From positions 7,341 through 71,340 of the forward strand of contig NW_003314269.1 in the NCBI RefSeq assembly GCF_000143415.4: DNA of 64,000 nt, in the 5' to 3' direction. The notes beneath the pieces were generated by a model that had not been told where the DNA came from, did not search any database, and saw nothing but the letters and a program-made list of their open reading frames with translations. Position 1 is the stretch's first letter, and each line of letters starts with the position of its first letter. Shown here one piece after another: positions 29,825 to 32,198 of the stretch. Source of the stretch: Selaginella moellendorffii. Lineage: Eukaryota > Plantae > Lycopodiophyta. The position numbers were made by a program, and so were the translations under genes.

Positions 29825-32198
29825 TCAGGGAAATATCCCACTGACTTTGTAGCATGTCGCTATCCTCTCAATAGCTATCAAATATGCTGCTGTGCGAAAA
29901 TTGCAGCCCTGCAACAAAATATTGAATCAGAGAAACAAACTCATGAGAAACAAACTCATGAAAAATAAACAAGTCACCTTTTTAGCAGCGACCGCCTTAA
30001 CTTTGTCCCATGCAACCAGCATGGTCTCTTCAAGTCCGGACCACACGAAATCCACCTCTGTATTTCTGGAAAGTTCGCAGAACAGCTATCAGAAAAAATG
30101 CTGCAAAGTTGAACCCCGGCAGAAGCTAACCCTTTAACAAGTTCGCGACGAAGCTCGTCAGATAATCTGTTTCCATTTCCAAACTCCAGTTCGAGAGCCT
30201 CAAGAAAAACCTTCATGGTGAGAAACAAGTTAGTTCAAGGTATCAGATAATACAGCCCACCCGTTTTCCACGCTCTTCCATTCTACGACTCATGCGCCCA
30301 AAGTGAATGTGATTCAAATTCTTTAGCCATTCAAAATATGACACAGTCACTCCACCCTGAAAAGGCACCATCACTAAACTTGCGTGAGCGATAAACAAAG
30401 AAGCCACACAATATACCGCATTCAGAAGCAAATCTGGTAAAATAACAACTCCTCTTTTCTCTAGGATCGCTTCGGCCGCAGGAGTTACCGGGCCATTAGC
30501 AGCCTCTGCTATAATGCGGGCCTGTTCACAAAAAGGTTTAAAAGTTCTCGAAGCATTGCTTTCGTTTTTGTACCTGTATAAGAGAGGCGTTGCCAGAATG
30601 TATTTGTGACTCCAACGCAGCTGGAATCAAAACATCACACGGCAGCTCTAATATTTTTGAAGAGTCTTCAACCTGTGCGACCAGGATTAGAACGTAAGAA
30701 CAAAGAATATGAATCCACTTACAGTGGAACCCTTGGGAAATCCTGTTATTGTTCCCTTTCGCTTAAAGTAATCCTTGACCTCTTTGATGTTCAAGCCCTT
30801 TCCTGTCTCATCAACAACCCCACCATCCTTCTCTGCGATGGCTATGATTCTTCCGCCAGCATCTTCAATGCACTGAAAAACAGTAGTTTGAAATTGCTTC
30901 CCACCGTAATCTGGTCATCTTACATCAATGGTGTGTTGACCGACGTTTCCAAAGCCTTGCACGATGATAGTTTTCCCTTCAATACCAGGTTTCATTTGCA
31001 GCTTGGATATCAGACCCTGCATAAAAAGAAATGAGTCGTAAATTCGATTTTGAAACAAACGCAAAACAACCTCGTCATCTAAAAACTCTCTCAAACAGAA
31101 AAACACTCCTAAGCCTGTAGCTTCTTGCCTCCCATGAATACCTCCCTGTTAAATGGTAAACAGAATGAGCAACTAGAGTGCACTATAGTACCTCTTCAAG
31201 TGGCTTTCCAGTTACGCAAGCTGTTCCATTTATGTCAGTTGACTGGAGATGCTCGTAAGTGTCCTGAAAAAAATCCTTTTTGACAAAATCACAGCATAAT
31301 AACCAACAAATACCTTGATCCAGGCCATTTCTTGGGATCCTGTTCCATAATCAGGGGCAGGAACGTCCTGAGAAGCCGAGTAATGCCACGTTTTGATCTT
31401 TGATGAGCAGAAGGAAATCCACTTACAATCGCAGGACCAATGAAGTTCTTCTTTACAAGCTCACTGGTGTATCGCCTTATGATCGCTTCCTTTTCCCCGG
31501 TGGAATACTTCGCAGGATCTGAAGGAAAGCATTGAAACTTTCAAGTTACCTGTGGCAACATGATACTACTCAGAAAGAAATAATTCTGCATTACAAAGAT
31601 CATTCCCACCTATTTTGATTCCTCCTTTCGCCCCTCCAAATGGGATGTCCACCAGAGCGCACTTGAAAGTCATCAACGCAGCCAACGCCATTGTTTCTTC
31701 GGCATCAACATTTGGAGCCATTCGTATGCCACCCTTGACTAGATAGAAAGAAAAGTTAGAGAGTATGACTTCATCAAGAAGAACTAATAATAGGCCATAC
31801 CTGGCATTCGATGGTGAGAATGTTGAGCTCTATAAGCCTCGATAAGCTCCACTGTTCCATCGGAACACTTGAGAGGAAATTGGACCTTTAAGATATTGTT
31901 ACATCCCTGCAAAGAAAGTGTTGTCTTGAGAAATCCACTAAAAGTAGTAGGTCACCTTGATCTGAGCCAATATATCTGGAGTTGGAGACGCTAGTGCCGC
32001 AGCTTTATCGTAGTAAATATCCACCGCCTCCAAGAACGCCGCATCACCTGCGAGAAATCGATAGCACAGGGATGATCGAAAATCTTGCTAGAAAATCACT
32101 ATACCAGTGACAAGAGAGGATAGATTCCGGGGTAGAGCCAAGACAGCAGGAATGCATCTCTTAGAAAGAATTGAACTGCGTCGGAGCAACATTTCCAT
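29825..32198 (-). CDS. GDH: Glutamate dehydrogenase, GLUD1-like (antenna-containing), ~16 exons, mitochondrial-type presequence
   Basis: [61 protein letters not shown] and [18 protein letters not shown]. Confidence 0.92.

Follow-up and report, generated by a model that had tools for sequence, protein, structure and literature searches.

Does a spikemoss carry a glutamate dehydrogenase (GDH) with an antenna, the segment that marks the animal enzymes GLUD1 and GLUD2, and if so, how was it acquired? The question is raised by a gene at positions 29825-32198, minus strand, of a 64,000-nucleotide stretch of the Selaginella moellendorffii genome (contig NW_003314269.1, positions 7,341 to 71,340), which is called the window here and in whose numbering all coordinates are given. 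In work on plant nitrogen metabolism, GDH is equated with the antenna-less enzymes GDH1-3. We conclude, with a probability of roughly 0.85, that the locus is an intact nuclear gene for a GLUD-family GDH which has a short antenna, is devoid of the animal residues for guanosine triphosphate (GTP) and adenosine diphosphate (ADP), and was inherited vertically. We infer that the product is probably mitochondrial and hexameric and that it interconverts glutamate and 2-oxoglutarate plus ammonium using NAD(P). The short antenna would be a helix-loop-helix of about 40 residues that follows the coenzyme domain and precedes the pivot helix. If the animal enzyme is a guide, the inserts of three subunits would wind around one another at the threefold axis, so that the subunits would open and close in a coupled manner. 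Vertical inheritance would have run through the streptophytes, among which seed plants appear to keep only the antenna-less GDH1-3.

Gene structure and the encoded enzyme

The gene, rebuilt from the sequence, runs on the minus strand from an ATG at 32198 to a stop codon ending at 29825, and consists of 16 coding exons, all of them open, and 15 GT-AG introns of 46-91 nucleotides. Its coding sequence of 1509 nucleotides specifies a protein of 502 amino acids that is identical (100%) to residues 45-546 of a RefSeq protein (P0161), which replaced it in later comparisons and which RefSeq already names 'glutamate dehydrogenase, mitochondrial'. The C-terminal protein text given in a preliminary description of this DNA is reproduced exactly by the rebuilt model, and the motif strings quoted there (HSHHRMPVKGGIR, ACVTGKP..GGIHGR, HTIDCIED and FVWSG) all occur in the rebuilt protein. 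Relatives were reached by means of an 87-amino-acid stop-free read-through (30261-30521, minus strand) made up of exon 12, the in-frame intron 12 and exon 13. The coding features are as follows, the contigs being those of the sequencing runs treated in the next section.

32105..32198, minus strand: coding exon 1, with the start codon; the N-terminal residues that it encodes are basic and resemble a mitochondrial presequence, which suggests targeting
31956..32047, minus strand: coding exon 2 (gene model and contigs)
31801..31906, minus strand: coding exon 3, ending in HSHHRMP (gene model and contigs)
31610..31738, minus strand: coding exon 4, with the substrate-binding and catalytic lysines of VKGGIR, FKCA and GGAKGG (bovine K90, K114, K126)
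31427..31518, minus strand: coding exon 5 in its productive form, intron 4 then being 91 nucleotides (gene model)
31314..31367, minus strand: coding exon 6 (gene model and contigs)
31192..31263, minus strand: coding exon 7 (gene model and contigs)
31071..31145, minus strand: coding exon 8, with GGIHGR (bovine R211); skipped in some contigs
30924..31016, minus strand: coding exon 9, with the dinucleotide-binding motif GFGNVG; HTIDCIED begins here
30723..30872, minus strand: coding exon 10 (gene model and contigs)
30574..30672, minus strand: coding exon 11 (gene model and contigs)
30417..30521, minus strand: coding exon 12 (gene model and contigs)
30261..30356, minus strand: coding exon 13, in which the antenna-like insert begins (gene model and contigs)
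30131..30210, minus strand: coding exon 14, entirely within the antenna-like insert; both flanking joints in 4 of 4 runs
29978..30065, minus strand: coding exon 15, with the end of the insert and the pivot helix (gene model and contigs)
29825..29908, minus strand: coding exon 16, with the stop codon (gene model and contigs)
30059..30308, minus strand: genomic span of the antenna-like insert (residues about 404-448), crossing introns 13 and 14 (AlphaFold2 model and alignment with GLUD1)

The protein has both domains of the ELFV dehydrogenases, the N-terminal one for dimerisation and substrate (Pfam ELFV_dehydrog_N, PF02812, E 8.8e-52) and the C-terminal one that binds NAD(P) (ELFV_dehydrog, PF00208, E 1.4e-59). 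In a search of solved structures, human and bovine GLUD1/2 were matched over the whole length (about 448 bits, E 3e-133), as was worm GDH, the score against Thermotoga GDH being 326 bits, whereas the alignments with Arabidopsis GDH1 (264 bits) and GDH2 (262 bits) end where the insert begins. For these reasons the protein is, by sequence, assigned to the GLUD family and not to the angiosperm GDH1-3 type, and the earlier view that it differs from the insert-free angiosperm enzymes is borne out by the gap between 448 bits for GLUD1 and 264 for Arabidopsis GDH1. Hexameric GDHs of about 50 kDa are recognized by the GGAKGG lysine, bovine K90, K114, K126, R211 and S381, and GFGNVG; here K99, K123, K135, R219 and S393 together with G259, G261 and N262 of GFGNVG are invariant or nearly so in an alignment of 60 sequences, in which the catalytic and substrate residues (K99, K123, K135, D177, R219, N361, S393) are invariant. 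Mammalian GLUD1 and GLUD2 (PDB 1HWY, 1L1F, 6G2U) resemble the Selaginella protein in sequence (about 45% identity end to end), the two-domain fold, the place of the insert, the catalytic residues and the WLKNLNH motif, and they too begin with a stretch like a presequence. The angiosperm enzymes (Arabidopsis GDH1, 6YEH; GDH2, 8OWM) share the ELFV superfamily, the reaction and the mitochondrial label, but they are about 411 amino acids long, have no insert and are only 34-35% identical, with 262-264 bits as against 448 for GLUD1.

About 40 residues stand at the antenna position and are a real insertion relative to antenna-less GDHs. From YFEW to the R.AAY of the pivot helix the span is 82 amino acids here and 88-94 in animals, the difference being due to a shorter descending loop, and it is absent in the antenna-less outgroups; the insert aligns with the GLUD1 antenna with 8 residues fewer. 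An AlphaFold2 model of the monomer (mean predicted local distance difference test, pLDDT, 91.5; predicted template-modelling score, pTM, 0.88) places a 22-residue helix at 408-429, a loop, a helix at 437-444 and the pivot helix at 449-475, with pLDDT of 84-93 in the insert region; residues 1-25 are disordered. The top Foldseek matches of this model are human and bovine GDH, with template-modelling (TM) scores of 0.85-0.87 over about 497 columns, and antenna-less GDHs, including that of Arabidopsis, reach 0.74-0.78. On the strength of these helices and of the Foldseek ranking of GLUD-type structures, the protein is predicted to carry an antenna-like helix-loop-helix element, in agreement with the antenna segment first read from the sequence. 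The antenna-bearing GLUD-type class is recognized by about 40-50 additional residues that separate the YFEW helix from the pivot helix and protrude as a helix-loop-helix; by span, alignment and model the protein belongs to it, and intertwining of three antennae in a hexamer would be expected by analogy. PDB entries 8S3G and 8QF0 are worm GDH by their Foldseek label; a literature search for these two codes found no GDH paper.

Transcripts and splicing

Twenty public runs contain part of the GDH stretch, and the 15 that match best cover about 0.3-0.44 of its sampled words, as expected of spliced exons. Contigs were taken from four runs, each of a different study and only guessed to be RNA, and aligned to the stretch; such contigs keep the commonest path and give no isoform ratios. 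The joints of introns 1-3 and 5-15 agree with the gene model in nearly all runs, the exceptions being intron 12, whose joint the contig of X2 does not show, and introns 7 and 8, which are listed only as an exon-8-skipping joint. Introns 12-15, which flank the exons coding for the insert, are spliced as modelled, and because the contigs carry their joints, exon 30210-30131 is not skipped. The structure proposed in the preliminary description for exons 30356-29978 is thereby confirmed in RNA-like contigs of four studies, and the exon whose skipping had been considered there is retained. Beyond the coding exons, the contigs indicate the following features.

32271..32400 (at least), minus strand: 5' leader exon; joint 32198/32271 in contigs of 4 of 4 runs
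32199..32270, minus strand: 5' leader intron of 72 nucleotides, GT..AG (contig joints)
31519..31549, minus strand: 31 nucleotides retained through an upstream alternative acceptor; joint 31547/31608 (cut +2) in 4 of 4 runs
29668..29712, minus strand: probable intron of 45 nucleotides, GT..AG, in the 3' untranslated region (UTR); loose contig ends at 29713 in runs X1, X2 and X8

The leader exon contains upstream ATGs at 32389, 32370 and 32280; the upstream open reading frame that begins at 32370 runs past the main start in a different frame. The splice junction that precedes the ATG at 32198 is itself immediately preceded by an in-frame TAG, and therefore the product of this transcript is the protein of 502 amino acids. 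The RefSeq model has instead a 40-nucleotide intron (32270-32231) that leads to an N-terminal extension of 44 amino acids; this intron is not among the joints listed for the contigs of the four runs.

Several points weigh against the reading of the locus as an intact gene for a vertically inherited enzyme. The contig path of all four runs uses the upstream acceptor of intron 4 (AG at 31551-31550), so that exon 5 starts at 31549 instead of 31518, and the retained 31 nucleotides shift the frame so that a stop codon follows after 169 codons. Exon 8 is missing from the main contig of run X10, being skipped in frame there and in minor contigs of the other runs (joint 31015/31191, skipping 175). Owing to the acceptor path seen in 4 of 4 runs and the loss of exon 8 in one, the productive mRNA may be a minor form in the sampled runs. 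The comparisons presented below add that the tree contains no angiosperm GDH1-3 or ciliate sequence, that the group submitted to its topology test was named after the tree had been seen, and that the absence from seed plants rests on two word-index protein searches and no genome scans. Lastly, the structure model is that of a monomer.

The splicing findings also suggest an alternative, in which the locus yields mainly non-productive transcripts, through unproductive splicing and mRNA surveillance or through decay of function, and a Selaginella paralog (P0178) is the active gene. We regard it as unlikely, although it is the most serious of the alternatives. It would account for the 31-nucleotide retention in every run, for the main contig of X10 and for the three leader ATGs, and the paralog, at 68% identity, does exist. 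The probable 3' UTR intron belongs on the same side: its loose ends in X1, X2 and X8 continue into window sequence from 29667 downwards, and its junction lies 112 nucleotides past the stop codon. Introns downstream of the stop codon are often linked to mRNA surveillance. Against this alternative stand the 16 of 16 open exons, the gap-free match of the productive form of exon 5 to GLUD1 and to P0161, and an identity of 77-80% to moss, fern and clubmoss orthologs, which, with all catalytic residues kept, requires that purifying selection has long acted on the productive frame. Moreover, the contigs show the commonest path only, and three joints are unlisted. The choice of the intron 4 acceptor and the skipping of exon 8 may represent regulated unproductive splicing of a metabolic gene. 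Because isoform ratios cannot be read from the contigs and the RNA nature of the runs is only a guess, we treat the splicing pattern as a caveat to the reading of an intact GDH gene and as a hint of regulation, and not as evidence that the gene is dead.

Origin of the gene and distribution of the short insert

The phylogenetic analysis comprised 71 sequences and 517 columns (IQ-TREE, LG+C20+F+G4 with posterior mean site frequencies, PMSF) with five antenna-less outgroups from plasmids; angiosperm GDH1-3 and ciliate sequences were outside this sample, and their distance is given by PDB scores and Foldseek only. A split with 100/100 support sets all insert-bearing proteins apart from the outgroup. 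The land plants are united (100/98, 12 rows) and are joined by Chara, Spirogloea and Closterium (100/100, 25 rows) and then by Chlorokybus and Mesostigma (100/96, 28 rows), and this streptophyte clade lies inside a clade of non-animal eukaryotes (98/95). The animals form a separate clade, so that animal GLUD and the Selaginella GDH are not sister groups, and the best tree unites all eukaryotes weakly (53/12). Enforcing an exclusive clade of streptophytes and animals costs 20.4 log-likelihood units (p-AU 0.0037 in the approximately unbiased, AU, test of this post hoc group).

Orthologs at 55-80% identity were found in non-seed streptophytes only, the lineages being Mesostigma, Chlorokybus, Chara, Zygnematophyceae, mosses, liverworts, lycophytes and ferns. 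This distribution agrees with two word-index searches, which covered about 5.8 billion proteins and had a Closterium ortholog and P0161 as queries: among the matches listed, those above 585 bits in both searches belong to non-seed streptophytes only, followed by unnamed eukaryote and metagenome sequences and then by bacteria at 52-53% identity, and no seed-plant ortholog is among them. A seed-plant ortholog at a fern-like identity of about 75% would have been listed, which supports loss in seed plants. Within the lycophytes, the window gene pairs with Diphasiastrum 09G and its 68% identical paralog P0178 with Diphasiastrum 18G, which suggests, with moderate support, that two old GDH paralogs exist and that their duplication predates the split of Selaginella and Diphasiastrum. 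Proteins that bear on these paralogs are P0178, P0177 and P0160.

It has to be asked whether plants could have acquired the gene horizontally, with an animal, a ciliate or a bacterium as the donor, as the preliminary description had allowed with its alternative of an old transfer. Its patchy occurrence in plants, with none found in seed plants, would suit such an event, as would close bacterial relatives (49-53% identity), some of them on alphaproteobacterial plasmids, and the weak resolution of the backbone where bacteria, animals and other eukaryotes part (80/76 and 53/12). The presence of orthologs in all non-seed streptophyte lineages sampled, Mesostigma and Chlorokybus included, the strong support for the streptophyte groups, the nested position of the streptophyte clade at 98/95 and the 15 host-style introns nevertheless make transfer very unlikely, and an animal source is rejected by the p-AU of 0.0037 for the exclusive clade. 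Any transfer would be older than the streptophytes, an age at which the data cannot separate it from early-eukaryote ancestry. The other proposal made at the outset, that of an ancient paralog lost in seed plants, fits both the streptophyte-wide clade and the want of seed-plant matches in the searches, and on these two grounds loss is favoured over transfer.

The short insert is not confined to plants. A span of 80-82 amino acids occurs in streptophytes (charophyte algae, mosses, liverworts, lycophytes and ferns), in the early-diverging fungi Batrachochytrium and Furculomyces, in the dictyostelid Polysphondylium, in a red alga and Anaeramoeba, and in Bacteroidota, Rhodothermota, KSB1, Chloroflexota and alphaproteobacterial plasmids. 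The dictyostelid Acytostelium is also among the protein matches, a Holophagales protein is among those of about 480 amino acids and a dinoflagellate-cluster sequence groups in the non-animal eukaryote clade, the span of the latter two not being separately listed; the model of a Sphingobacteriales protein contains the same helix-loop-helix. The label 'animal/ciliate-type', originally given to the Selaginella enzyme, is therefore too narrow, since the short insert is common to non-animal eukaryotes and many bacteria and an exclusive clade of streptophytes and animals is rejected.

The bacterial comparison set consists of 'Glu/Leu/Phe/Val dehydrogenases' of about 470 amino acids (e.g., Sphingomonas koreensis WP_047867100.1; 49-53% identity) from Bacteroidota, Rhodothermota, KSB1, Chloroflexota and alphaproteobacterial plasmids. 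They resemble the Selaginella protein in a span of 80-82 amino acids, which aligns with 0-3 gap columns among the bacteria sampled, and they too are for the most part without the animal GTP and ADP residues (R217 is kept in 7 of 11); they differ in having neither presequence nor introns and in forming clades separate from the eukaryotes. Bacterial GDHs of about 450-480 amino acids whose insert agrees in length and position were further noted at L001:365-1771, L002:443-1798 and L003:386-1795 and as P0211, P0197 and P0289, and plasmid-borne insert-bearing GDHs in Sphingomonas, Rhizobium and Marinovum.

The literature describes the antenna as unique to animals and as first appearing in ciliates (PMC7326016, PMC11050691, PMC12364357, PMC13179614), the latter statement being made in a 2024 review (PMC11050691), and papers of 2020-2026 state that microbial and fungal GDHs lack it. 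The insert-bearing bacterial GDHs contradict this claim for microbial enzymes. We tentatively propose, at slightly less than even odds, that a short antenna of about 40 residues is ancient, shared by several phyla of bacteria and by a wide clade of non-animal eukaryotes to which all the sampled non-seed streptophyte lineages belong, that in animals it merely became longer and the GTP and ADP sites were gained, and that seed plants appear to have lost the enzyme entirely. If this is true and unpublished, it overturns the statement repeated in the papers of 2020-2026.

What is new here is the comparison and not a new kind of protein, the gene being already annotated. The novelty originally claimed is reduced by the existing RefSeq name and by ortholog annotations in Marchantia, Physcomitrium and ferns; it is sustained in so far as literature searches for this clade in seed-free plants found no paper characterising it. 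Spikemosses, mosses, liverworts, ferns and charophyte algae have a second, GLUD-like GDH with an antenna, which bears on the nitrogen metabolism of seed-free model plants.

GTP and ADP sites and the genomic setting

Bovine residue numbers were mapped through the PDB alignment and residues were counted per group. At the nine positions of the GTP site the Selaginella protein reads as follows.

Bovine H209: H
Bovine S213: E
Bovine R217: L
Bovine R261: D
Bovine Y262: C
Bovine R265: D
Bovine K289: K
Bovine E292: K
Bovine H450: W

Seven of the nine positions are changed, several of them from basic to acidic, and only H209 and K289 are kept. Among the 10 animals sampled, no variation occurs at seven of the nine; position 289 holds K or R, and nine of the animals have H at position 450. 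The ADP residue of the pivot helix, bovine R459 (human R463), is V463 here; it is arginine in 10 of 10 animals and never arginine in the other groups sampled. Outside the animals, in streptophytes, other eukaryotes and most bacteria, the GTP and ADP positions vary or hold other residues. S213, R217, R261, Y262, R265, E292, H450 and R459 thus distinguish mammalian GLUD1/2 from the Selaginella enzyme, and, judged from its residues, the latter would have neither the animal site for GTP inhibition nor that for ADP activation. The GTP-contacting patch had already been described as altered in HTIDCIED and FVWSG, which is seen here as S213E, R217L, R261D, Y262C, R265D, E292K and H450W, and the expectation of an antenna with probably no GTP inhibition is well founded at this level.

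Regulation in the manner of mammalian GLUD1, with GTP inhibition and ADP activation at the same sites, could be argued from the common fold, the position of the antenna and the retention of H209 and K289. We consider it highly improbable, even more so than transfer, and reject it, since 7 of the 9 GTP-site residues and R459 are replaced at positions that are invariant or nearly so in the 10 animals and variable among streptophytes. As these residues are lacking, any allostery in the Selaginella GDH would have to use other ligands or only the cooperativity of the subunits. The nearest functional analogy, likened by description only, is the ciliate GDH of Tetrahymena, which reportedly has an antenna and no GTP inhibition (Allen et al. 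2004, Biochemistry). A natural antenna without GTP and ADP sites would allow a test of what the antenna itself contributes, and if the present reading is true, Marchantia and Physcomitrium are tractable systems in which to study the function of such a bare antenna.

The idea that animal or microbial DNA contaminates the assembly here, for which only the mammalian identity of the best solved-structure matches would speak, has a negligible probability and is rejected, because the flanking open reading frames are plant-type and the protein sequence is found unchanged in a RefSeq entry of Selaginella (P0161) on a 3.7-Mb contig, in addition to which the introns of 46-91 nucleotides are sized as elsewhere in the Selaginella genome, transcripts occur in runs of several studies labelled as the same organism, and other land plants are the nearest relatives in the tree. 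The argument from about 15 short host-style introns, put forward earlier, holds with the 15 introns now modelled and the plant-type neighbours. Upstream of the gene, a stretch at about 32545-32600 resembles the T-arm and acceptor end of a tRNA, and neither ARAGORN nor Rfam reported a tRNA there. The plant-type neighbours are open reading frames for the following proteins.

22897-24156, plus strand: AP2-domain protein
33604-36408, plus strand: leucine-rich repeat (LRR) receptor-like kinase
37580-38995, plus strand: Kelch-repeat protein
40654-41808, minus strand: GATA zinc-finger protein

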